This document shows, piece after piece, positions 1,005 through 60,886 of a DNA stretch of 64,000 nucleotides (the stretch's first letter is position 1; every line of letters starts with the position of its first letter). The notes below the pieces were generated by a model. That model was given only the letters and a program-made list of their open reading frames with translations. It did no database searches and was not told where the DNA came from. The position numbers and the translations under genes are program-made. The stretch is taken from the IMG/VR virus record IMGVR_UViG_3300044625_001067, positions 1 through 64,000 of that record; one strand, written 5' to 3'.

Positions 1005-1286
1005 ATATGGAACTAAAACTTTTTGTAATAATGACCGTGGCGCACCTGGTTCTGTTCCCCGCAGCGTGGTGGGTACTCACTAAACCTGATGCGATTCGGC
1101 GCTGGATGGCTGAAAGGTTGAAATCGTGAGTACTCAACTAGCCACTAGACCCGAAACAGAGCGACGTCACCGTTGTTCTCGAAAGCGTCCGGGTTACTTA
1201 CAGAAGTAAAGAAAGATCAGTAAACGAAGTTTACTCTTACCCTTAGCCTTGAAACTAAGTTCAAGGCAAGGCAAATTCACCTGAAG

Positions 1287-2363
1287 ATGAAACCTACACT
1301 CCACCTAATCGGAATTTTTCACACACAACCTACTCAGGCGTATAGTCACTGTGCATTCACCGGAAAGGCCATGCGCTTTCCAAGGATGATGATGGCGCAA
1401 GGGTACAACGTAATCGAGTACGCGAATGAAGGTTCTGAGGCGAATGCATCGGAGCACGTTACAATGCTGACGGCAGACGAATTTGACAGACTATACGGCA
1501 ACCGCGACGATCGGGAATTCCATGGAGACGACGCCACAATTGGAACAGAGGGTCACCAACTCTTTGAGTCTCGTATAATTCCTGCGCTTCACGACCGTGT
1601 AAGACCTCGCGACATTATCTGCCACCCGTTTGGTCACGCCCACTCCGCTTTGCTGAGCGAGTTTCCCTCAAGTACACACGTTGAAACCGGTATTGGGTAC
1701 CCTACAACAATGCAGGGAACAAAGAAGATATACGAGTCCTACGCCTGGATGCACTATCACCAGGGGAAAGAGGGGAGGAACGGTGAGAACTACGAGTGGG
1801 TTATTCCCAATTATTTTGACACAAGCGAGTGGGAACCTTCGTTTGAAAACGGCAACTATCTCGCATTCCTGGGAAGAATAACCCCACTGAAAGGTCTTGA
1901 CACAATCAAGGCACTCGCAGACTACAGTCCCTGGAAAATCCGCTTGGCCGGACAAGGAGATCCAACACCTTGGGAACACCCTAACATTGAGTACGTGGGG
2001 CCACTCAAGGGCAAAGAACGTAGTACGTTCCTACGAAACGCACGTGCCTGCTTAATGCCGACCACCTTTACAGAACCGTTCGGGGGGTCTGGGGTTGAAG
2101 GAATGCTCTGCGGAACTCCTTTAATATCCGTAGACTACGGTGCCTTCACAGAGACCGTTGTCGAAGGTGTTACTGGATTCCGGTGTCACACTCTTCAAGA
2201 CTGGGTGAATGCTTTGCATAACGCAGGGGTCCTGGACCGCAAGAGGATACACGAGATTTCGGCAGCAAAGTACAGCCTGGACGTGTGCGGGAAGAAGTAC
2301 GCCAGAGTATTTTCCGACTTGGACAATTTGTGGGATGAAGGTTGGTATACTTTGAGTGTCTAA
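1287..2363 (+). CDS. glycosyltransferase, GT4/GT-B family
   Basis: 'FLGRITPLKG', 'EPFGGSGVEGMLCGTPLI', 'ETVVEGVTGF' GT-B motifs. Confidence 0.9.
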   Translation: MKPTLHLIGIFHTQPTQAYSHCAFTGKAMRFPRMMMAQGYNVIEYANEGSEANASEHVTMLTADEFDRLYGNRDDREFHGDDATIGTEGHQLFESRIIPALHDRVRPRDIICHPFGHAHSALLSEFPSSTHVETGIGYPTTMQGTKKIYESYAWMHYHQGKEGRNGENYEWVIPNYFDTSEWEPSFENGNYLAFLGRITPLKGLDTIKALADYSPWKIRLAGQGDPTPWEHPNIEYVGPLKGKERSTFLRNARACLMPTTFTEPFGGSGVEGMLCGTPLISVDYGAFTETVVEGVTGFRCHTLQDWVNALHNAGVLDRKRIHEISAAKYSLDVCGKKYARVFSDLDNLWDEGWYTLSV

Positions 2364-30376: not shown

Positions 30377-31111
30377 ATGACCACCTTTCAGTTCTACGAA
30401 GTTGGCGGTTGCGTCCGAGATTCTCTCCTTGGCCTTTCAAGCAAGGACGTTGACTTCTCCGTTGTTGCTCCCGACGGCTTCAACACAGCAGATAGTGCCT
30501 TTCTGGCTATGGAAGCCCAGCTTACCGAGCAAGGCTTTCAAATCTTCGAGTCTCGCCGTGAGTTCCTGACTATTCGGGCGCGGGTCCCGAAGGGCCATGA
30601 ACTGGGAGCCCGCACCGCTGTCGCCGATTTCGTACTGGCCCGCCGAGACGGCCCTTACAGCGATGGCAGGCGGCCAGACTGGGTCGCCCCTGGTACCCTG
30701 GCCGATGACCTGGCTCGGCGTGACTTTTCTGTAAATGCACTCGCCCGAGGCGTGGACGGCACCCTGATAGACCTGTTTGGTGGTGTGGAGGATTTGGGTG
30801 CCAGTCTGCTGCGCTTTGTGGGTGACCCTACGAAGAGAATCGCTGAGGATGGCCTCCGTGTGATGCGTGGACTCCGCTTTCATGTAACCAAGGGGTTTGA
30901 TGTCGAGGCCGAAACTTGGAAAGCCCTTATCTCCGAGTTCGCTGCGGAGAAGCTCTCGAAAGTCTCCGTCGAAAGAGTGCGCGAAGAGCTGAACAAAATG
31001 TTCCGTGCAAACACCTTGCACTCTCTTCGTTTGCTCGGTGAGCTGCCTCAGCACACCCAAGAAGCGATCTTCCGCGACGGTCTCCGCCTCGACGCCACAA
31101 TGGCTCAGTGA
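30377..31111 (+). CDS. cca: tRNA nucleotidyltransferase (CCA-adding/poly(A) polymerase family)
   Basis: 'VGGCVRD.LLG...KDVDF', 'DLARRDFSVNALA', 'EDGLRVMRGLRF', 'VSVERVREEL'. Confidence 0.92.
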   Translation: MTTFQFYEVGGCVRDSLLGLSSKDVDFSVVAPDGFNTADSAFLAMEAQLTEQGFQIFESRREFLTIRARVPKGHELGARTAVADFVLARRDGPYSDGRRPDWVAPGTLADDLARRDFSVNALARGVDGTLIDLFGGVEDLGASLLRFVGDPTKRIAEDGLRVMRGLRFHVTKGFDVEAETWKALISEFAAEKLSKVSVERVREELNKMFRANTLHSLRLLGELPQHTQEAIFRDGLRLDATMAQ

Positions 31112-36714: not shown

Positions 36715-37497
36715 ATGGCACACACTGACACCCTTGGAGACCTTCTTAAGGCTCAAGAACAGGCGGAAGCGGGGCGAAAAGCCGACCCGTTACTCCCCCT
36801 TATGGCACGTATCGACGGTAGCTGCTTCAGTGCTTTCACCAAGGGGCTAGAGCGACCATTTGACGAGCGATTTGTGCAGTTAATGATTGAAACCACCAAG
36901 TTTCTCGTTGACAAGAGTGAAGCCCAACTCGGTTACTGCCAAAGTGATGAAATTACATTGTTCTGGTACCTCGACAAGGAAAATTACTCGAACAGAGAGC
37001 TGTGGTTCGGTGGCAAGTTTCAAAAGCTGACCTCGATCCTGGCCGGCTCCGCATCGTCATACTTTAGTGCGAACATTCCAAAAGTTCTGCATGAAAAGCA
37101 AGGGTGCTATCCCGTGTTTGACGCGAGAGTGTGGAATGTCCCGGACTTAGAACACGCATACCTAAACTTTGTCTGGAGACAACAAGATGCGCAGAAGAAC
37201 TCCGTATCCATGTACGCTCGCCACTTCTTCTCCCACAAGTCTCTTCAGGGCAAAACCTGCCGAGAAATGAAGGGAATGCTTGCCGAAGTCGGAAAGCCAT
37301 GGGAAGAACTCCCTAAGTTTTTCACTCACGGAACGTTCGTGCGAAGGCAGCGCCGTCTTGTCAACCCCGAGGATCTTGTTGGCATTCCCGAGAAGTACCG
37401 CCCGACCAAGGCAATCGTTCGCACTGTTGTTGAAAAGTGGGAGCCTTATGGGGAACTTTCCTTGAGCGACTTTGCTCCTTGGGCTTTTGCTCGGTAA
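36715..37497 (+). CDS. thg1: tRNA(His) guanylyltransferase Thg1-like 3'-5' polymerase
   Basis: 'RIDGSCFSAFT', 'GYCQSDEITL', 'GKFQKLTS', 'FDAR', 'WRQQDAQKNS'. Confidence 0.93.
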   Translation: MAHTDTLGDLLKAQEQAEAGRKADPLLPLMARIDGSCFSAFTKGLERPFDERFVQLMIETTKFLVDKSEAQLGYCQSDEITLFWYLDKENYSNRELWFGGKFQKLTSILAGSASSYFSANIPKVLHEKQGCYPVFDARVWNVPDLEHAYLNFVWRQQDAQKNSVSMYARHFFSHKSLQGKTCREMKGMLAEVGKPWEELPKFFTHGTFVRRQRRLVNPEDLVGIPEKYRPTKAIVRTVVEKWEPYGELSLSDFAPWAFAR

Positions 37498-39008: not shown

Positions 39009-40527
39009 CCCCCGAAAGCCCTAAACCAATGGTAGACCCTGCACAAACTGACTTGTTTACTGCCCCGGTGACTTCAGACTATCAAGTAAAGACCCGCTGG
39101 GGTTTCATGGGGTTCGAGAATCAGTATTGGGATAAGACAAAAATAGGGGAGATAATCACACTTTCCGGACCGCGAGTTGATGTAGATCACAAGAGAAAGA
39201 ATACGTTTAGTGGGTATATTCTTGACCTAGAGTTTCTTACTTGCGAGGATTATAGCAGGGTTCAAGGGGAGTGGACAGCGCCGAAACACATGGATTGCGC
39301 TATTGCAACTATGTGGACTTTTAAGGGAACCGCCGCTAGACGTAAAATGACGACACTACTTAAAAGTGGGCTTGGCATTGGCGTCTCAATTGAGCATGGC
39401 GGTAGAAAGCCTAAAAGAACCATAGGTCCTTGCATAACAGTCACCCATTGCCCCCAAAACCACGATGCATGGGTTATAACTGGAGCCATCGCAGGAAAGT
39501 TCTACAGCAATTTGTATCCAAAGAACAAAACACTTCCGGACTCAGTTTTGAACTGTGCACGGGAGCAATACGAGAAGCACGCTAAACAAGTGTTTCATAC
39601 ACGTGGGAATAGAGATTTCATTCGTGCCCAGCTAGAGTGGGAACCTGGCGGGTCTTACTACAAGTTGTTAAATCCACCCTGTCGAGGGTGAGGTTAGTCG
39701 GGTACGGTCAACCGCACCCCTGAAGGCGGTTACCCGCCTTGCCTTTTCCAGGAAAGTAAGGCATAATTAACGAGAAACTGAACGATGGCCCTCGAACAAT
39801 GAAGTCCACATTTTACGTGAAGAACGAAAAGGTTGAGAGCACAAAAGCTCTCGTTCGCCAACACGCAACTCTAAGATTTCTACAAAACCCTTTACAGGTG
39901 GGTTCCTCAACCGAATTCTGCTTAGAAGGCGATGTCAAAGACTTTAATTCTCTCAACGTTATGCTGGAGGAGCTAAACGTCGAAGAAAAACCAGAACCAG
40001 GGAGCTTTGTTGAACATTTCTGGTCAGTTGTAAGGGGTTCCCCTCGCAATCGCAACCTGTGATTGCCGCAGAAACGGTTAGCCGGCCCCATCCGTTAGGT
40101 CCTTTTTCGGCCTTTGCAAGTAAACACGTCATTCTACTAGCATGGACATTAAGTCACCCTTGACTGACATAGGCTTGCGTAACTTGGCTCACGCACCCCG
40201 TCCCACTGCGGCAAGGGCTCGAAAGCAGATTAGAGAGATTAAAAAAGGGTCCGGCGTGTCTGTGAACGATTGGACGTTTAGAGGTAACATGAAGTACTCT
40301 ATAAACTGCGGAAGTCTAGAAGACACTTCTACAGCCGTATCTTGGCTGAAAGAGAAGAGTATTGCTGTTCTTGAGTGCCCTAAGATACTTGACGCCACAG
40401 CATAGGGCGACGGATGGATTGCTTATTTGGTTAGACCTATAGCGTGAAGGCGGTTTCCTGGCTTGTTTGCTTGGGGGACTCCCTCTGACAACCCTGCGGC
40501 ACTCAAGTCGAATTCTCCCGCCCAACG

Positions 40528-40572
40528 GGGCGGTTACCCGCCCTTTTGCCCCTCGGCGAAACGGGCTATAGT
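40528..40572 (+). promoter_or_regulatory. composite promoter 1 of RNA island
   Basis: GGGCGGTTACCCGCC...TATAGT; no plausible ORF follows. Confidence 0.8.
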
Positions 40573-40600
40573 AAAGGAGTGGTTGAGAGCTTCGCTCCTC

Positions 40601-40785
40601 GCCCCCCTTGCGAAACGAACCTCGAAAAGATCGCGTCTTTGTAAAAGACCTAAGTAGCATACCCCACGAATGTACCTCGTTAGTCGTGCTTGGCGGGTTA
40701 AGCGTAAATGCTTCCGTAAGCTGGGGAAAGGGCTAGGACAAATTGCTACTACAATGACGCAATCTTCGAGACTTCGCCAAGGGGC
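40601..40785 (+). ncRNA. ~185-nt rod-shaped structured RNA of unknown class
   Basis: Nested pairings GCCCC/GGGGC, CTCG/CGAG, AAGAT/ATCTT, GCGTC/GACGC, AGTAGCA/TGCTACT, CCCCA/TGGGG; lies between two promoters. Confidence 0.65.
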
Positions 40786-40787
40786 AA

Positions 40788-40831
40788 GGCGGGAAACCGC
40801 CCTTTACTCCCCTAGCCAAACAAGCTATAGT
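40788..40831 (+). promoter_or_regulatory. composite promoter 2 of RNA island
   Basis: GGCGGGAAACCGCC box, TTTACT, TATAGT 40826-31. Confidence 0.8.
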
Positions 40832-40911
40832 AAAGGGGTGGTTGAGAGAGCTTCGCTCCTCACTCTTTCCCCGGTCTCTCCGGGGGCAACTTGAAAATTT
40901 AAGATTTACAC

Positions 40912-41006
40912 ACACTGGTGAGTACACAGGTTGGGGTACGACCAAGTGCTACCGTGGTCGGGCTTTTACCCTGGTAAGGGGTGAAAGAGTTGGTAGCAGC
41001 CAGTGT
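40912..41006 (+). ncRNA. pseudoknotted multi-stem RNA of unknown class
   Basis: ACACTGG/CCAGTGT closing stem; three internal hairpins; loop TGCTACCG complementary to TGGTAGCA. Confidence 0.55.
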
Positions 41007-41017
41007 TAAGACCAAAA

Positions 41018-41140
41018 GGTTAACGAGAGAGAAAGATCACGGTTCGAGTCCGGATCCAGCAGTAATTGAGCCCGTCAAGGGCATTCCTAGCCATGGTTGC
41101 GGGGTAGTTTAAGTGGCCTAAAAACATTCTCTCTTTTACC
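41018..41140 (+). ncRNA. circularly permuted tRNA-like element 1
   Basis: Order: GAGAGAG, T arm (TTCGAGT), acceptor closed by a linker, TA-GTTT..AAAC D arm, TTCTCTC. Confidence 0.65.
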
Positions 41141-41219
41141 CAGGGGACAATGGCGGTCGCGGCTAACGCCAAGTGCGACTAAGCCACGTCTCATGACCCC
41201 GGTTGATCCCGGGGTATAC

Positions 41220-41293
41220 GCTGCAGTAGGCGAATTGGTTAAGCCGCCAGACTTTCAATCTGGAAATTACGGGTTCAAACCCCGTCTGCAGTA
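41220..41293 (+). tRNA. tRNA-Glu(TTC)
   Basis: GCTGCAG/CTGCAGT; CCAGA-CTTTCAA-TCTGG; ACGGG-TTCAAAC-CCCGT. Confidence 0.9.
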
Positions 41294-41422
41294 TGACCCT
41301 GTGGTTTAACCCATGGGGCACCCTGTGGTTCAACCCGTAGGGCAAATCCACCTTGCCTCTACAGATCGGGAGATAGCATCAAAACGAGTCATCGTGGAAG
41401 AGGGAAGAACTCGGTGGGTTCC

Positions 41423-41548
41423 TGACTAAGAGTGTTAGAGGTTAGCATGTTCCTTTGGGCGAAAACAGTAAGATAGAACGAAGGCCAAGTTCCGTATCTG
41501 TGAGTAGTTTTGACAGAGGAGGTTGAGGTTCGAATCCTCGTTAGTCAC
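41423..41548 (+). ncRNA. tRNA-like RNA with ~50-nt hairpin insertion in the anticodon arm (Gln-like)
   Basis: TGACTAA/TTAGTCA acceptor, D arm, TGAGG-TTCGAAT-CCTCG T arm; extended anticodon arm. Confidence 0.7.
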
Positions 41549-41695
41549 TTGCCCCTCGGCAACAGGGTGCTTCGTTATGCCCTGACCATCAAACATAACG
41601 CCGCTTCTCGTGACGGTAAGATCGAGACTCTGCATCCCTGAGTAACGGGACGCTTAATGTTTGTCGGACAAACATCCTTGGCAACTCAACAGGTT

Positions 41696-41790
41696 AAGAC
41701 GTTGCGAGTCACAGCTGGTAACTGTGACAGGGGACAAGTCTGGTTGACGTTCTGTGCACAAGAACCACGGGTTCGATTCCCGGCGTCTTC
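41696..41790 (+). ncRNA. tRNA-like RNA with extra arm (Cys GCA-like loop)
   Basis: AAGACGT/GCGTCTT; GTCACAG/CTGTGAC hairpin; GTTCT-GTGCACA-AGAAC; CGGG-TTCGATT-CCCG. Confidence 0.6.
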
Positions 41791-41816
41791 GTTGGTTTGC
41801 TTTCGCAAACCCTTAC

Positions 41817-41865
41817 TTCCGCTCTTCTGAGGCCGAAAGCCACGGGGTTCGAATCCCGGCGGAAA
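41817..41865 (+). ncRNA. miniature tRNA-like element (acceptor + T arm, GAAA hairpin)
   Basis: TTCCGC/GCGGAA; GGC-CGAAA-GCC; GGG-TTCGAAT-CCC. Confidence 0.55.
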
Positions 41866-42097
41866 CTGCTCTAAGGGGCAATCACAGGCAAACGCGAGAG
41901 AAATTATGGACAATAGAGCCCGAGGATTTCTCGGATACTCACCCGGCTCCCCTTCGGGTCCCTTCAAGGGATAATTCCTTAGCCTCATAATGTGAGGGTC
42001 CTTTGGGCAACAGTTTCGATTGATCGTAAACCCTCGTTTGGAAAGTGCGGCGCATAACTAAGTCCGTGCGGAAGACAGCAGTGGGTGACCGTCGAAG

Positions 42098-42177
42098 TTG
42101 AAACGGAGCTGGACGCTCGTACTCGTACAGGATGGCCTCTGTGCGAGCAATGCAGGTTCGATCCCTGCCGTTTTAAT
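42098..42177 (+). ncRNA. D-stemless tRNA-like element with long anticodon-position stem
   Basis: TTGAAACG/CGTTTTAA; GCTCGTAC/GTGCGAGC; GCAGG-TTCGATC-CCTGC. Confidence 0.6.
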
Positions 42178-42244
42178 TGCCCAAGATAAACCCACTGGCT
42201 AACCCTGGTACGGTTAATCGCAAGGCAATCCCTCCGGAGGGGAA

Positions 42245-42309
42245 GGTGCGTGGCTTAGTGGTAAAGCTGGTCCGAAAGGCTGAACGCAGGTTCGATTCCT
42301 GCCGCACCA
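42245..42309 (+). ncRNA. tRNA-like element with GAAA tetraloop replacing the anticodon loop
   Basis: GGTGCG/CGCACC; canonical D arm GCTT-AGTGGTA-AAGC; GCAGG-TTCGATT-CCTGC. Confidence 0.7.
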
Positions 42310-42310
42310 C

Positions 42311-42951
42311 TTGGAGTGAGATTCGAGAGTTAGTCGCCTCGATACCCGCAGGGGTATAGCTTAAAGACTCCCTAACAGAGCGCACTCAACCCCAGTTATC
42401 CCACGGCGCTGGTCGCATAGCCGAAGGCACTTCCTGAAGAAGGAACAACTACCGCTGGCGGACCTGGGGCGGTTTGTTGTAAAACAATTGGTATTCAGTA
42501 GCGTCTCGCGAGCAACGCTGATACAACCAGGTCCTGCGACCCTAAGTTAATGCCTCCACGTGGCAGGGTTGGTAACTTTCCCTTTAGGAAAGGCCAAATT
42601 AACAGGGAATTTCTCATCCCGTACGTGAGAAACCTCGACCAAGGTGAGAAGTCAGTCGCTCAGGACACTCTGGGAAAACCTGCCAAGGGTTAATTTGGAC
42701 GGAACTTTCATCCGTTACGTGAAAGCTCTCCTTTGGATTTCGAAGGAATCCGGGGTACTTTGACAGCGATTTGCTCTAAAACCTTCAACAGGTCTGGCAA
42801 TTCGGTGAGTTTGATTCCCGCTTACTCCATTGGATTTTCTCAAATCCGACACCCCCAGAAAAGTTTACTACCTTTGGTAGTGACTATAATGGATGAGTCA
42901 CTGCTCTGCTTGGGCGAAAGCTAAACGGATAACCGGACCGTTCAGCTCCAA
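42311..42951 (+). ncRNA. large ornate structured RNA (~640 nt) with several pseudoknots
   Basis: Terminal stem TTGGAGTGA/TCAGCTCCAA and many long-range complementarities (see findings); no credible ORF. Confidence 0.7.
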
Positions 42952-43208
42952 GTATCAGGTTTCCCCTGGGTTAGCACCCAGGGGTTTAACCCATTCTAGA
43001 AACTGGGATCGTAAGGAAAACGTCGTTAAGTTCCCGTCACTGCCCTGTAAACAGACGTTAACATGGGGTGCTTTCTTGAGGGCTGTCTTGCCGCTGGTAT
43101 CGCTAGATGAAACACTCTTACCGGCCAGTTTGCGAGCCCTGCTGAAAGCTTAGTCCCCTCTGTGCGGCATTGGTTCGCCAAGGCCACGGGATTAGCCTCC
43201 CGTGCTAC

Positions 43209-43284
43209 CCAGGTATCGCCTAACTTGGCTATGGCACCTCTTTCGGGAAGAGGAATAGTCCCGGTTCAAATCCGGGTGCCTGGA
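43209..43284 (+). tRNA. tRNA-Pro(CGG)
   Basis: CCAGGTA/TGCCTGG; CCTCT-TTCGGGA-AGAGG; CCCGG-TTCAAAT-CCGGG. Confidence 0.9.
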
Positions 43285-43355
43285 TGTCCCACTAACGTGG
43301 GAGCAAGGAAACTTGATAACTAAGTAACTATTCTGTCGCAAATGCGATAGCATTT

Positions 43356-43429
43356 GGGGTCTTAGCTCATTTTGGTAGAGCATCTCTGTGGCACGGAGAA
43401 GGTGACCGGTTCGATCCCGGTAGATTCCA
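43356..43429 (+). tRNA. tRNA-Ala(GGC)
   Basis: GGGGTCT/AGATTCC with G3:U70; loop GTGGCAC. Confidence 0.92.
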
Positions 43430-43457
43430 CTTTGTGGGCAACCACAAACTAGAGCAA

Positions 43458-43531
43458 GGGCTTACATGTACCAAGGCTGGCGAGATTGCTTTGCAAGCAA
43501 ACTGTGAAGAGTTCGATTCTCTTTGGGTCCA
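43458..43531 (+). tRNA. tRNA-Ala(TGC), atypical D arm
   Basis: GGGCTTA/TGGGTCC with G3:U70; loop TTTGCAA; AAGAG-TTCGATT-CTCTT. Confidence 0.75.
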
Positions 43532-43552
43532 CTTTCGCTAACGCGAAAACAC

Positions 43553-43668
43553 GAGGGAGAAATGCCGGTTCAAGTCCGGCTCTGGGGGTCCTATAACGTG
43601 GGGTCCTGGGTAGTTTAACTGGTGCCAAGGACTTGTTATCAGTACGCACAAGTCCAAAAACTTCTTTC
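43553..43668 (+). ncRNA. circularly permuted tRNA-like element 2, with hairpin inserted in the D loop
   Basis: GAGGGAG, GCCGG-TTCAAGT-CCGGC, closed acceptor hairpin, TA-GTTT-AACTGGT..[GGACTTGT/ACAAGTCC]..AAAC, TTCTTTC. Confidence 0.7.
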
Positions 43669-43674
43669 CCACAA

Positions 43675-43747
43675 CCCCTCATAGTGTAGCGGCCAAGCAC
43701 GCACCTCTGTCTAAGGTGTATCACGGGTTCAAATCCCGTTGAGGGGG
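43675..43747 (+). tRNA. tRNA-Asp(GTC)
   Basis: CCCCTCA/TGAGGGG; CACCT-CTGTCTA-AGGTG; G73. Confidence 0.92.
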
Positions 43748-43783
43748 TTATTCCGAGGGGTGGCCACCCCAATGACGAATAAA

Positions 43784-43843
43784 GCCAGAGTCCCTGGATA
43801 GGGAAGAGTCGCGACAACGGGGTTCGAATCCCCAGCTCTGGTG
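43784..43843 (+). ncRNA. tRNA-like element lacking an anticodon arm
   Basis: GCCAGAG/CTCTGGT; CCCT-GGAT-AGGG; stub GTCGCGAC; GGGG-TTCGAAT-CCCC. Confidence 0.6.
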
Positions 43844-43860
43844 TTGACGCCCTGGATTGA

Positions 43861-43925
43861 GCGGTTAACCGTTTGCTCCGGGACGGTTTCCCGCCCTTTC
43901 ACCTTTCTGCGAAACGGGTTATAGT
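43861..43925 (+). promoter_or_regulatory. composite promoter 3 of RNA island
   Basis: GCGGTTAACCG and ACGGTTTCCCG boxes, TATAGT 43920-25. Confidence 0.8.
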
Positions 43926-44070
43926 AAAAGGGTGGTTACGGGAGTTTCACTCTCGGCCCCGAACGCTGCGGTTAGGTCTCTGCGTTAGTGAGACTGGCAG
44001 GAGCCCGCCTCCCAGGGCGATGCTTAAGAGCTAGACCCCTTTCTCTGGTTCCCGGAGAAAGATTCCCCGA

Positions 44071-44120
44071 TCCAACTGGTGGTTTGCCTCCGGCAAAGCA
44101 GGTTCGAGTCCTGCCTTGGA
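44071..44120 (+). ncRNA. miniature tRNA-like element
   Basis: TCCAA/TTGGA; CTGGTGG D-loop remnant; TTTGCC/GGCAAA; GCAGG-TTCGAGT-CCTGC. Confidence 0.5.
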
Positions 44121-44213
44121 AATTGGTGCGAAGATCCCTAAGTCTTTATGCCATCTCGTCTCAGAATCCAGCTGTTTGCTTAGGGGCGAACGATCTCTGG
44201 TGAAAAGAGCGAG

Positions 44214-44287
44214 TCTCTCATCGACTAATTGGTAATGTCACCGCCGGGTTACTGGTGGGAATCCAGGTTCGAACCCTGGTGAGAGTG
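44214..44287 (+). tRNA. tRNA-Asn(GTT)-like with 8-nt anticodon loop lacking U33
   Basis: CTCTCA/TGAGAG; CCGCC-GGGTTACT-GGTGG; CCAGG-TTCGAAC-CCTGG; G73. Confidence 0.7.
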
Positions 44288-44316
44288 TTTGCTCTAGTGT
44301 GCTAGAGTGATTAAAA

Positions 44317-44390
44317 GCCCGAGTAACCCAGCGGAAGAGGTGCCTGACTTAAAATCAGGAAGTCGTAGGGTTCGAATCCCACCTCGGGTA
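44317..44390 (+). tRNA. tRNA-Leu(TAA), short variable loop
   Basis: GCCCGAG/CTCGGGT; CCTGA-CTTAAAA-TCAGG; A73. Confidence 0.88.
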
Positions 44391-44441
44391 TTGCTCCTTT
44401 GACCTGGGCCTGGAAGCTCAGTGAATAAGGAACAAACAATC

Positions 44442-44516
44442 GCGTATGTACCCCAACCGGAAGAGGGGCAACACTGAGACTGTTGTTATGTGGAGGTTCG
44501 ACCCCTCTCATGCGCA
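44442..44516 (+). tRNA. tRNA-Leu(GAG), short variable loop
   Basis: GCGTATG/CATGCGC; CAACA-CTGAGAC-TGTTG. Confidence 0.85.
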
Positions 44517-44589
44517 TTTTCCTTTTACCACCCTTCACATAGTGGCGGTAGCTTGGAAAGAACCCTGCGGTTGAAAACCATGGGCAAAA

Positions 44590-44660
44590 TCTCGAATCGA
44601 CTAGTGGTAGGTCGCCTGTCTCTGAAACAGGAAACTTTGGTTCGAATCCAAATTTGAGAA
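44590..44660 (+). tRNA. tRNA-Gln(CTG)
   Basis: TCTCGAA/TTTGAGA; CCTGT-CTCTGAA-ACAGG. Confidence 0.9.
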
Positions 44661-44715
44661 TAACGTTTGGGGCACATCTATGTGCCCTTGCGTACGTTTC
44701 TCGTAGAGAAACCTT

Positions 44716-44804
44716 GGAAGAGTGGTCGAGTGGCTGATGACGATTGCTTGGAAAGCAATTGAGGCGCAAAAGCGTCTCCGGAGGTTCGAATCCTCTCTCT
44801 TCCG
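44716..44804 (+). tRNA. tRNA-Ser(GGA)
   Basis: GGAAGAG/CTCTTCC; loop TTGGAAA; long variable arm; G73. Confidence 0.95.
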
Positions 44805-44862
44805 TCTCACCTGAAAGTAGTACAGCAATAGGGTAAATTATAGGAGTCAATACGTATTTACC

Positions 44863-45564
44863 ATGTCGCTAGGATACTTCTCAGACGAGGTAGTTGAGTG
44901 GCTGTACGAGAACTACTCGGAGTTGGCCGGCAGTATTCTCTACGAATTTACAACGTGCCAGCGACCCAACGGAACTGTATACGGCACGGCAGGAACTTGT
45001 CGAAAAGGTTCCGAGATAGAACAACGGCGCCAGGAGTCAATAACTCACCTGAACACTACCCTGGCTTCCTTAAGGAACAAGCGTGATAACTCACCCGAAG
45101 AGAGCAGGAGCAGGATAAATAGATTGATCACCAAGCTGGAAACGGACCTAAAGGCTATTCAGGGTGTTAAGGGGGCGGAAAAGAAAAGTACGGGGGTCGG
45201 TAGTAGAGCAACGGGTCAGGACCCTATTCGAAATCCCGTGGATCATTCTGCGATGACGCCTGAAAAGACTCAAAATGAGACGTATGGGTTTTACGGTACT
45301 ACTCGAGATGCGAAACCCAAGGAAGTGGAAAAGCGCTGGCGTCACGCATCACGAGCGATTCAGTCTCAAGGGGTGCTTCCGATACACGCACGACGCCTGC
45401 TCGACGCGTCGTGGGGTAGGCATTTGGCAAATGAGCTGGGGAAGACACCAACTGACAAGGTATGGAAGACGGTTCAAGAAATGCTTGAGAAACGTGATTC
45501 ACCAGAACGAAGAGACTTCCTGAAGATTTTGAGGATGGTCACAAGAGAGGACTACGAAGACTGA
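44863..45564 (+). CDS. hypothetical protein with N-terminal 'CQRPNGTVYGTAGTCRKG' motif
   Basis: 233-aa ORF preceded by GGGTAAA motif; last plus-strand gene before the strand switch. Confidence 0.7.
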   Translation: MSLGYFSDEVVEWLYENYSELAGSILYEFTTCQRPNGTVYGTAGTCRKGSEIEQRRQESITHLNTTLASLRNKRDNSPEESRSRINRLITKLETDLKAIQGVKGAEKKSTGVGSRATGQDPIRNPVDHSAMTPEKTQNETYGFYGTTRDAKPKEVEKRWRHASRAIQSQGVLPIHARRLLDASWGRHLANELGKTPTDKVWKTVQEMLEKRDSPERRDFLKILRMVTREDYED

Positions 45565-47930: not shown

Positions 47931-48332
47931 TCATTGCATAACCTGAACACAAGGAATCCCAAGTTCTCTCACAACTTTACAGTTGTCTTGGTTGTCGTCG
48001 TACCAAAGCGAAGGGCGTCCGAAATCTTCAATAATTGCGAGAGCTTGCTCGGTCTTAACGTAGTGGTCGGGGAGATCGTCCCCGTCCTCTCTCATGTATA
48101 AGGCGTCGAACTTAACACCCACACTTTGTAGCCAGTTTTCTGAGCCGGCTCGAAGACGATTTGGGCGAGCAGTGGATATAAGGATTGTAACACCGGATAC
48201 AGCTAGAGATACTGCAAGTTGAACGAGTGGCAAATTGGCTCGAAGCGTTGCAACATTGTCTTCGTAATACCACTCACTCGTGAGTGTCATGTCAATATCA
48301 AACACCACTAAGGGGTTATTTTTAGGCGTCAC
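47931..48332 (-). CDS. HAD-family phosphatase (T4 Pnkp 3'-phosphatase-like)
   Basis: 'VFDIDMTL', 'STAR', 'LYMREDGD..PDHYVK', 'YDDN'. Confidence 0.8.
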   Translation of the reverse strand: MTPKNNPLVVFDIDMTLTSEWYYEDNVATLRANLPLVQLAVSLAVSGVTILISTARPNRLRAGSENWLQSVGVKFDALYMREDGDDLPDHYVKTEQALAIIEDFGRPSLWYDDNQDNCKVVRELGIPCVQVMQ

Positions 48333-59853: not shown

Positions 59854-59965
59854 TGGGACCGGCAGGACTCGAACCTGCAACCGCGCCTTTAAAAGAGGTA
59901 ATTTAATTGCTGATGTATCTTTGTCAAGATAACTTTTCGTGCTCTACCAGTTGAGCTACGGTCCC
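59854..59965 (-). tRNA. tRNA-Lys(TTT) with 39-nt insertion in the anticodon stem
   Basis: GGGACCG/CGGTCCC; CG[39 nt]CCT-CTTTTAA-AGGCG; GCAGG-TTCGAGT-CCTGC. Confidence 0.8.
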
Positions 59966-60764: not shown

Positions 60765-60886
60765 TCGAAGAGGCAAGATTCGAACTTGCGTATGGCGGTT
60801 CCTTTTGCGTATTGGGTAATTGCTGAATTACCTAAGCTAGGTAATCTTTTTGCATTACCACTGCCTAACCACTTGGCTACTCTTCG
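60765..60886 (-). ncRNA. tRNA scaffold whose anticodon loop is replaced by an AAAAAG-hairpin-TCAGCAATT module
   Basis: CGAAGAG/CTCTTCG; GCC-AAGTGGTTA-GGC; GTGGT/ACCGC; GCAAG-TTCGAAT-CTTGC. Confidence 0.8.

Follow-up and report, generated by a model that had tools for sequence, protein, structure and literature searches.

The first 64 kb (64,000 nucleotides, hereafter the window) of IMG/VR record IMGVR_UViG_3300044625_001067, a lake-water jumbo phage genome of 277,244 bp estimated to be 98% complete, contain a tRNA array in which canonical tRNA genes stand among tRNA look-alikes that have no regular anticodon arm. This array, the second of the phage, occupies 40.9–44.86 kb on the plus strand and has no convincing open reading frame (ORF). 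Its Glu, Pro, Ala, Asp, Leu (two), Gln, and Ser tRNAs are canonical, and a ninth tRNA, for Gly, lies upstream at 37.7 kb, as called by ARAGORN. The main array (121–141 kb, minus strand) is almost wholly canonical. Over the whole genome there are 55 Rfam tRNA matches, 54 of them over the family cut-off, and 49 ARAGORN tRNAs, with nearly all amino acids covered. As read from the sequence, none of the tRNAs or look-alikes has an encoded CCA.

Anticodon-less tRNA look-alikes in a phage tRNA array

About ten T arms in the second array belong to no called tRNA. Seven such orphan T arms, located on the plus strand between 41.5 and 44.3 kb, have perfect 5-bp stems and a GGTTCRANNCC loop, and none received an ARAGORN tRNA call. 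Comparable chance matches are ~100-fold rarer per kb in the rest of the 277-kb genome, and the orphan T arms are real and far above chance. A preliminary description had grouped five elements (E1–E5, Table 1) into a single family of anticodon-less mini-tRNAs, each with an acceptor-like stem stacked on a T arm. The observation is real for four of these five loci and extends beyond them.

Table 1. Features of the second tRNA array, its surroundings, and related loci. Positions are those of the window unless marked as genome positions.
Feature	Position	Strand	Description
109-nt structured RNA domain	41026–41134	+	Conserved; T-loop hairpin, D-loop-like GGGUAGUUUAAGUGG motif, 7–8-bp closing stem
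125-nt tRNA-like RNA	41423–41547	+	7-bp acceptor, perfect T arm, long nearly invariant insert
96-nt tRNA-like RNA	41695–41791	+	Acceptor, long D-like hairpin, 5-bp stem with 7-nt GUGCACA loop, T arm; z = -2.4
E1, 49-nt mini	41817–41865	+	5–6-bp acceptor, 8-nt linker, GGC-CGAAA-GCC hairpin, imperfect T arm
E2, cloverleaf	42098–42176	+	No usable anticodon loop; folding z = -3.7
E2–E3 spacer RNA	42177–42243	+	Conserved; 85–97% identity in L012, L013, and L023
E3, 67-nt tRNA look-alike	42244–42310	+	Rfam tRNA, 40.4 bits
227-nt RNA	42311–42537	+	From 3' end of E3 to predicted ribozyme cleavage site; predicted boundaries
HDV-like self-cleaving ribozyme candidate	42538–42604	+	RF02682; cleavage predicted 5' of G42538
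Probable decoding tRNA-Ala(UGC)	43458–43531	+	G3:U70, aberrant D arm; missed by ARAGORN and Rfam
E4, 57–60-nt mini	43784–43843	+	7–8-bp acceptor, 4-bp hairpin CCCU-GGAU-AGGG, T arm
E5	44071–44120	+	Perfect T arm, 5-bp acceptor-like helix plus C.C mismatch, 6-bp hairpin with 3-nt loop
73-nt cloverleaf (outside the preliminary list)	44214–44287	+	7-bp stem with 4-nt GUUA loop at anticodon position
Putative terminator-plus-promoter module, copy 1	40526–40600	+	Upstream of array
Putative terminator-plus-promoter module, copy 2	43879–43935	+	
Putative terminator-plus-promoter modules, three further copies	genome 135331, 138790, 140713	-	In main array
PolyA_pol-type (CCA-adding-type) nucleotidyltransferase	30395–30814	+	
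Thg1-like enzyme	36715–37497	+	
HAD-type PNKP	47931–48332	-	
T4 Rnl1-type RNA ligase	genome 86036–86602	-	

A 5-bp anticodon stem with a 7-nt loop (U33, purine at position 37) occurs in none of E1–E5. ARAGORN called none of the five in the window, and in a search of 9.5 kb no Rfam tRNA match was found for E1, E2, E4, or E5 even at E ≤ 10. E3 is different, in that its acceptor, D arm, and T arm align to the Rfam tRNA model (RF00005, gathering threshold 29 bits), with 12 nt standing for the 17-nt anticodon arm. By folding, this substitute consists of 4 bp with a bulged U and a GAAA loop; the D arm is canonical, and the 1:72 pair (the first pair of the acceptor) is open. In E1, a stump of 3 bp carries a CGAAA loop, so that the two CGAAA/GAAA loops noted earlier are both present. 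The absence of a D stem from several elements was likewise correctly described, and applies to E1, E4, and E5.

The five elements have no common architecture, and the proposal of one family does not hold; the set is heterogeneous and has more members outside the list. E1 and E4 are genuine minis of 50–60 nt, consisting of an acceptor, one small hairpin, and a T arm. E2 had also been listed as a mini, and is instead a cloverleaf of 77–79 nt with a 7–8-bp acceptor, a 4-bp mini D hairpin, a perfect T arm, and a 10-bp stem with a 6-nt loop at the anticodon position. An alternative 8-bp pairing in E2 (42115–22 with 42141–48) is disfavored, being broken by two of the changes in the related contig L023. 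E4 has no anticodon arm, and in its place stands a linker with the palindrome GUCGCGAC (43808–43815). A second perfect 8-nt palindrome, GAGUACUC, occupies the same site in the linker of a further group of elements, family F (L012, 8244–8251). These palindromes look like two stem strands joined without a loop, and could support dimerization. E5 is the weakest of the set. There is a weak resemblance to E2 in its T arm and trailer, and an alternative 73-nt reading of E5 (44049–44121) was ruled out, its 5' strand being locked in a 9–10-bp hairpin.

A 7-bp acceptor on a 5-bp T stem with a 7-nt T loop is present in E2 and in the L023 copy of E1. E3 falls short of this by the open 1:72 pair and E4 by a C.A mismatch in the T stem, and neither E5 nor the window copy of E1 has it. 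ARAGORN and Rfam identified no transfer-messenger RNA (tmRNA) in the window, and G3:U70 is lacking in the acceptors of E1–E5. The elements are set in a longer ORF-free array, and conserved RNAs other than tRNAs flank E1, E2, and E3.

The acceptor helices were compared with chance by shuffling the upstream 100 nt, with P being the frequency of an equal or longer helix. The values were 0.04 for E2, 0.06 for E3, 0.14 for E4, 0.38–0.58 for E1, and 0.87 for E5, whose acceptor is no better than chance. Because the acceptor helices of single sequences are unimpressive, the case for these elements rests on comparison with relatives.

Conservation and compensatory changes in related phages

Homologues of the flanking 233-aa protein were found in near-identical phages only. 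The Thg1-like gene, located 3.4 kb upstream, served as the anchor for relatives and yielded phages having a 47–82% identical protein. Homologous pieces of the array are present in L012 and L013, whose Thg1-like proteins are 71% and 69% identical, respectively. A metagenome scan with the conserved E2–E3 spacer contributed L023, a 2.3-kb contig that is 88–96% identical to 41444–43893. Eleven compensatory double changes are found across six families (four in the E3 family, three in family F, and one each in E2, E4, the 125-nt element, and the 109-nt domain), and disruptions are nearly all at terminal pairs. These changes, along with the orthologues, support acceptor-on-T-arm structures that are tRNA-derived and non-decoding for E2, E3, E4, and the E1 lineage, as had been proposed; for E5 the acceptor helix is at chance level.

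E3 is confirmed as the most solid of the five listed elements. It is identical between the window and L023, and a pattern scan of IMG/VR identified elements of the same design in a second, unrelated lineage (L044 and L142–L145, contigs of 82–146 kb). In the alignment across lineages, three acceptor pairs and one T-stem pair are changed on both sides and the remaining pairs are kept, with the stump region being the most conserved part. The 1:72 pair is open in each E3 or E3-like copy (A.A or G.A). A looser E3 pattern retrieved nothing extra from IMG/VR, and a scan of GTDB genomes with the E3 pattern gave 0 matches. In the second lineage, the E3-like element of L145 (975–1042, plus strand) lies 21 nt upstream of an HNH_3 homing-endonuclease-type ORF (1064–1618, plus strand), and the tRNA array that holds it also has a CTA (amber-reading) tRNA.

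E2 has orthologues in L012 (8051–8121, Rfam tRNA score 37.8 bits) and L013 (13971–14041, 40.5 bits), both of which ARAGORN reports as 'tRNA-??? (aa)' with a 2-nt anticodon. Identity to E2 is 85–87% in the T arm, the 3' strand of the acceptor, and the 55 nt of spacer that follow. The D and anticodon parts cannot be aligned, as L012 and L013 have a canonical D arm and a 3-bp stump there. One acceptor pair has changed from A-U to C-G and another from G.U to G-C, and 1:72 is C.A in both orthologues. In L023, E2 has three changes, each of which either lies outside the helices or affects the terminal pair of its long stem.

The spacer between E2 and E3 is better conserved than the body of E2 and is the best-conserved piece over three phage lineages. 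It is closed by UUGCC/GGCAA, and strain breakpoints occur at its 3' end (42226–42228). No Rfam match was found for it, and scans of IMG/VR and JGI metagenomes retrieved it from the three lineages plus L023 and L025 only. A 60-aa ORF (42177–42359) that covers the spacer and E3 was ruled out by frame-breaking indels in the relatives.

The window copy of E1 has a G.G mismatch in its T stem. In the L023 orthologue, the 7-bp acceptor (UUUCCGC/GCGGAAA) and the T stem (ACGGG/CCCGU) are both perfectly paired, and the central hairpin is unchanged between the two copies, making the window copy a less regular variant. In E4, the T stem CGGGG/CCCCA becomes UUGGG/CCCAA in L023, which combines a G-C to U-A double change with repair of the C.A mismatch to U-A; the double change is also seen in a contig of RNA run X20. 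E5 is 100% identical in all seven related contigs, and hence no covariation signal is obtainable from it.

Several further tRNA-like members accompany the listed five. The 109-nt domain is 93.6% identical to L013 13688–13796, and its closing stem GAGAGAA/TTCTCTC is replaced there by GAGGGAA/TTCCCTC, a compensatory change. The 125-nt element is conserved in L013 (87.6%) and L023, with an acceptor pair A6-U changed to C6-G and a T-stem U.G changed to U-A. The 96-nt element differs from L023 by one change in its unpaired middle (41735) and one G-C to G.U substitution. The cloverleaf at 44214–44287, called by neither ARAGORN nor Rfam, has a U.U mismatch at 1:72 and a z score of about -1.9 to -2.8. 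Family F occurs in the relatives L012, L013, and L023 only and consists of an acceptor, a D arm, an invariant 18–19-nt linker (CAUCGCAGAGUACUCA(n)UU), and a T arm, with Rfam tRNA scores of 40.6–44.5 bits. Outside the D loop, all its substitutions but one, at a linker position, are in the acceptor stem, and three of the seven acceptor pairs covary.

The open 1:72 pair recurs in E3, the E3-like elements, the E2 orthologues, and the 44214 element, that is, in about half of the non-decoding families. Of the genome's 42 canonical tRNAs that could be resolved, with the T arm as anchor, 40 have this pair closed.

The tRNA-Asp gene of L023 (reverse strand, opposite 43675–43747 of the window) has a 5-nt insertion and three substitutions, which are confined to the anticodon loop and its closing stem pair; elsewhere there is one stem change only. 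This gene is a decoder in the course of losing its anticodon loop.

Setting of the array and look-alikes in other phages

The second array has a ~70-nt module at its upstream side and another within it (Table 1). Each module opens with a GC hairpin and TTT, continues with a -35-like box and a TATAGT/TATACT -10 box, and closes with the conserved leader GGRGTGGTTG, a consensus that suggests a terminator followed by a sigma-70-type promoter. The genome has five copies, every one at a tRNA array, and an IMG/VR scan with the module found no match beyond the phage's own lineage. A short form, in which the repeated module links 40606 directly to 43879, was seen in two independent samples (L005/L002 and L007). 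The 3.27-kb block that holds E1–E4 (40606–43879) is thus a present/absent polymorphism among near-identical phages, and its deletion is due to recombination between the two module copies.

The RNA data consist of assembled contigs of lake RNA runs, which show presence rather than ends and may include DNA. Twelve of the listed lake runs are RNA libraries with about half or more of the sampled words of the array. Over 39600–45500, word depth in the contigs of four metatranscriptomes is 10–30 across 41.3–43.1 kb versus 0–5 in the genes on either side. The compact canonical tRNAs at 44.1–44.8 kb have almost no depth, as expected of mature tRNAs in standard libraries. The contigs span elements plus their neighbors.

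Downstream of E3 is a candidate self-cleaving ribozyme of the hepatitis delta virus (HDV) type. It scores 25.6 bits with the HDV-F-prausnitzii model, under the gathering score of 44, and is the sole match in the genome (E = 0.0014). From the cmscan alignment one can draw P1 (G.U at the base), P1.1, P2, P3, P4, and the J4/2 C. In L023, the P4 loop alone differs, becoming UUCG, and the core is invariant. Contigs of three RNA runs extend from 42226–42265 to 42527–42531, and contigs of all four runs start at 42549–42554, which is consistent with breakage of the RNA at 42537/42538. Together, E3 and the ribozyme would set the limits of a 227-nt RNA, which is 95% identical in L023. E3 had been proposed as the 5' end of a 640-nt RNA; such an RNA would probably be cut at 42537/42538 by the ribozyme, giving the 227-nt RNA instead.

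We asked how far look-alikes of this type extend by scanning IMG/VR for a D loop and a T loop that are 3–11 nt closer to each other than any canonical tRNA permits. These scans are pattern-biased and incomplete and speak to the existence of a wider class, not to its frequency. At least 116 loci were found, and the counts that follow are among the matches listed. Of 117 matches, 78 combine a perfect T stem with six or more of the 7 acceptor pairs and are 54–80 nt long; ARAGORN makes no call for 64 of these 78, assigns a 2-nt 'anticodon' to 11, and a normal anticodon to 3. At least 52 sequence clusters are represented, and for 49 of the 78 no canonical tRNA lies within 2 kb. The same type of scan of cellular genomes gave 24 of 119 that pass the filter. 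Helices of at least 3 bp capped by GNRA are present in 10 of 85 distinct middle segments versus 1.3 from shuffles, and those capped by UNCG in 3 of 85 versus 0.5, an enrichment of about 7-fold for the two caps together. No consistent downstream gene was found; small terminase subunit, scaffold protein, capsid protein, DUF6353, and TnpB genes are among those that follow the elements.

The phage also encodes enzymes of tRNA handling, as listed in Table 1; RtcB was looked for and not found. The Thg1-like gene adjoins tRNA arrays in four relatives (L012, L013, L014, and L017), and an open 1:72 pair would be a template-directed repair site for a Thg1-like enzyme.

The tRNA-Ala candidate at 43458–43531 stands outside the anticodon-less set; it shares 87% identity with a gene annotated as tRNA-Ala in Pseudomonas phage VCM. 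Four tRNA genes have 40–85-nt inserts in the anticodon or variable region (window 59854–59965 and 60765–60886, and genome 137882–138000 and 138412–138570, all on the minus strand). They keep normal acceptor, D, and T arms, and a group I intron would be longer than these inserts. Of the four, the two window genes have a UCAGCAAUUA motif in common, and the gene at 137882 has an orthologue in L012 (9946–10063). A permuted two-piece tmRNA of the cyanobacterial type lies at genome 104340–104723 (minus strand; 54.7 bits, under the Rfam cut-off), and one in L013 (20239–20471) exceeds the Rfam thresholds. This type hints at a cyanobacterial host. Contigs of RNA runs also join 41373 to 41792, 42009 to 42097, and 43671 to 43943, omitting 418, 87, and 271 nt, respectively. 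Two of these three junctions fall on ends of tRNA-like elements, and their flanks are short; they may be strain-level cassette variants or result from joining at the RNA level.

Possible roles of the look-alikes

The explanation that best accounts for these observations, and that we hold tentatively, is that the elements are non-decoding tRNA-derived genes, matured as tRNA-body mimics, which punctuate a polycistronic transcript together with the HDV-like ribozyme. Acceptor/T-arm minihelices suffice as substrates of RNase P and CCA-adding enzymes. The array would be transcribed from the sigma-70-like promoter modules, with real tRNAs, other structured RNAs, and the ribozyme in the same transcript. 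RNase P would recognize the acceptor/T-arm minihelix of each element and cut on its 5' side, 3' nucleases would trim down to the discriminator base, and a CCA-adding enzyme, a type that the phage encodes, would extend the 3' end. Each element would thereby act as a punctuation mark that frees its neighbors, and would itself be freed as a small stable tRNA-body mimic unreadable by the ribosome.

A role as processing signals had been suggested in the preliminary description, and it is the best supported reading of the set. The fit lies in the retention of the acceptor and T arm, a middle that is free or reduced to a capped stump, interleaved conserved RNAs, and a ribozyme predicted in the same transcript, to which the context adds putative promoters and a CCA-adding-type enzyme; the cleavages themselves are predictions. 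E2 provides an example, as its T arm, acceptor, and downstream spacer are kept between lineages while the middle is replaced. A role as modulators of the stringent response, suggested in the same place, found no support, since reading in the ribosomal A site requires an anticodon. Toxin decoys, the remaining suggestion, are a possible role.

Precedents for such punctuation are the plant mitochondrial t-elements (PMC1920247; Forner et al. 2007) and mascRNA of MALAT1 (PMC8457004), whose acceptor/T-arm structures are processing signals for RNase P and RNase Z. Like the elements described here, these are tRNA-derived, reduced to an acceptor and T arm with or without other arms, non-decoding, and located within longer transcripts, and they define the ends of neighboring RNAs through cleavage by the two enzymes. 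They differ in being eukaryotic, nuclear or organellar, with cleavage proven by experiment, whereas the present elements belong to a phage tRNA array and are known from sequence. Several of the phage members, furthermore, retain a complete D arm together with a capped stump, and in some the middle is conserved. Theta ribozymes (PMC10879173) are minimal HDV-like ribozymes that have been reported directly behind tRNAs, so far in gut Caudoviricetes only. The candidate here resembles them in its location within a phage tRNA array and in being predicted to make the 3' end of an upstream RNA; it differs in coming from a lake phage, in lying 227 nt past the nearest tRNA-like 3' end (that of E3, 42310), and in scoring under the Rfam threshold.

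Among non-tRNA RNAs of phages, the small stable RNAs of the T4 tRNA cluster (species 1 and 2) and the RNase P-processed C4 RNA of P1/P7 are matured by the tRNA machinery. They are likewise located or co-transcribed with phage tRNAs, and have no sequence relationship to the elements. The look-alikes share with canonical tRNAs (RF00005) the acceptor and a T arm whose loop reads GTTCRANNC. A normal D arm and a score over the Rfam gathering threshold are added in E3, family F, and the E2 orthologues; the 5-bp anticodon stem with its 7-nt loop is found in no member. The tRNA-like domain of tmRNA similarly combines an acceptor and T arm without an anticodon arm, but the elements lack G3:U70, an mRNA-like part, and pseudoknots. 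The 'tRNA-Other' of Bacillus cereus (PMC3399842) is a bacterial tRNA-like gene that is also non-translational, and there has a phenotype; it differs in architecture and is a single chromosomal gene. A survey of viral contigs mentions unclassified 'tRNA or tRNA-like' structures (PMC10690425), and in the literature searched we found no description of phage-encoded anticodon-less tRNA look-alikes.

Several observations weigh against punctuation. On single sequences the acceptor helices are not significant relative to shuffles, and the minis are no more identical to L023 than are many spacers. The block holding E1–E4 is dispensable, as it is missing from near-identical phages of two independent samples. 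Logan contigs pass through E3 into the downstream RNA without a break; these may reflect unprocessed precursor or DNA carry-over, and processing is in this respect a prediction. Most members of the wider class, among the matches listed, are solitary and hence do not punctuate arrays. Finally, the conserved middles of E3 and family F are not needed for pure punctuation, nor does punctuation alone account for the recurrent open 1:72 pair.

Because punctuation leaves the conserved middles, the open 1:72 pair, and the solitary members unexplained, the main rival is a role in trans as a decoy or cofactor. The look-alikes would be free-standing tRNA bodies that titrate proteins reading the acceptor, T arm, or elbow, such as host tRNA-targeting nucleases, nucleotidyltransferase toxins, or phage repair enzymes, and would neither offer a cleavable anticodon loop nor enter translation. 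We consider this rather unlikely, and several features speak for it. The elements lie in an accessory block that is polymorphic in otherwise 99%-identical phages and is located among the Thg1-like, PNKP, and CCA-adding-type genes. The middles of E3 and family F are conserved beyond the needs of a helix, and most wider-class members, among the matches listed, are solitary. In initiator tRNA, a 1:72 mismatch disfavors binding by EF-Tu, and the open pair of the non-decoding elements contrasts with the closed pair of nearly all canonical tRNAs of the genome. Phage tRNAs have been described as countering anticodon nucleases, and mutation of the anticodon loop has been put forward as a hypothesis for phage tRNAs (PMC10264068). 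Most characterized anticodon nucleases, however, recognize the anticodon stem-loop itself, which is absent from these RNAs, and no defense or partner protein was identified for the elements.

Decay is the next explanation to be weighed. Partial tRNA genes are common in prokaryotic genomes (PMC9897764), and the elements might be functionless pseudogenes or recombination scars of a fast-evolving array. This is a serious possibility for E5, a T arm with a chance-level helix, and for the window copy of E1, which is paired worse than its L023 orthologue. The insertion in the anticodon loop of the L023 tRNA-Asp reveals ongoing loss of decoding, the boundaries of the block and the deletions fall on element ends, and the block is dispensable. 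For the set as a whole we regard decay as unlikely, given that eleven compensatory double changes are spread over six families with disruptions almost all terminal, and that E2 and family F are kept between phages whose Thg1-like proteins are only 69–71% identical. The recurrence of the E3 design in an unrelated lineage and the enrichment of GNRA/UNCG caps in the wider class, among the matches listed, likewise argue against decay.

A role at the DNA level is very improbable. The elements would then be cleavage-immune target variants or cargo of homing endonucleases, or modules for recombination of the array, as the position of the E3-like element just upstream of the HNH_3 ORF and the breaks of strain variants at element boundaries might suggest. 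No HNH remnant was found in or near the array of the window or elsewhere in the phage genome, the genes downstream of the wider class are diverse among the matches listed, and compensatory changes in stems indicate selection on RNA.

Scarcely credible is a role as genuine decoders of an unusual kind, whether frameshift suppressors or tRNAs whose anticodon loop is short or long, or as split or permuted tRNA halves joined by a phage ligase, for although the phage has a T4 Rnl1-type ligase and PNKP, D-arm-only motifs resembling 5' halves occur at about 41100 and 43607, and some wider-class members have 6-nt loops with 2-nt anticodons by ARAGORN, the loops are of 4–6 nt or absent and lack U33 and the purine at 37, 49 canonical tRNAs are already in the genome, and halves were ruled out by the presence of both acceptor strands in each mini and the lack of a complementary 3' strand at the 41100 and 43607 motifs.

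Structures conserved through compensatory changes, their presence in RNA libraries, and a wider class in phages are what we observed, and on these rest the predicted enzymatic steps of punctuation and the putative function as mimics. A broader proposal, which we regard as doubtful, is that phages widely encode non-decoding tRNA-body mimics, with a stump that is often GNRA- or UNCG-capped and a 1:72 pair that is often open, and that these act in trans. They would inhibit tRNA-directed host immunity or divert it as decoys that cannot be cleaved, or would serve phage tRNA-repair enzymes, among them the syntenic Thg1-like protein, as cofactors or substrates.

The tRNA genes of phages have come to be viewed as weapons in the conflict over host defenses that cleave tRNAs. 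Annotation pipelines drop anything that has no anticodon. As this locus shows, what is dropped can include elements that are conserved, are under structural constraint, and occur in RNA libraries. Our crude pattern scan suggests that such look-alikes are common in phage contigs. As processing handles, these elements would account for the cutting of long phage RNA arrays into tRNAs, RNAs bounded by a ribozyme, and other small RNAs; as decoys, they would constitute a new type of RNA-based counter-defense.

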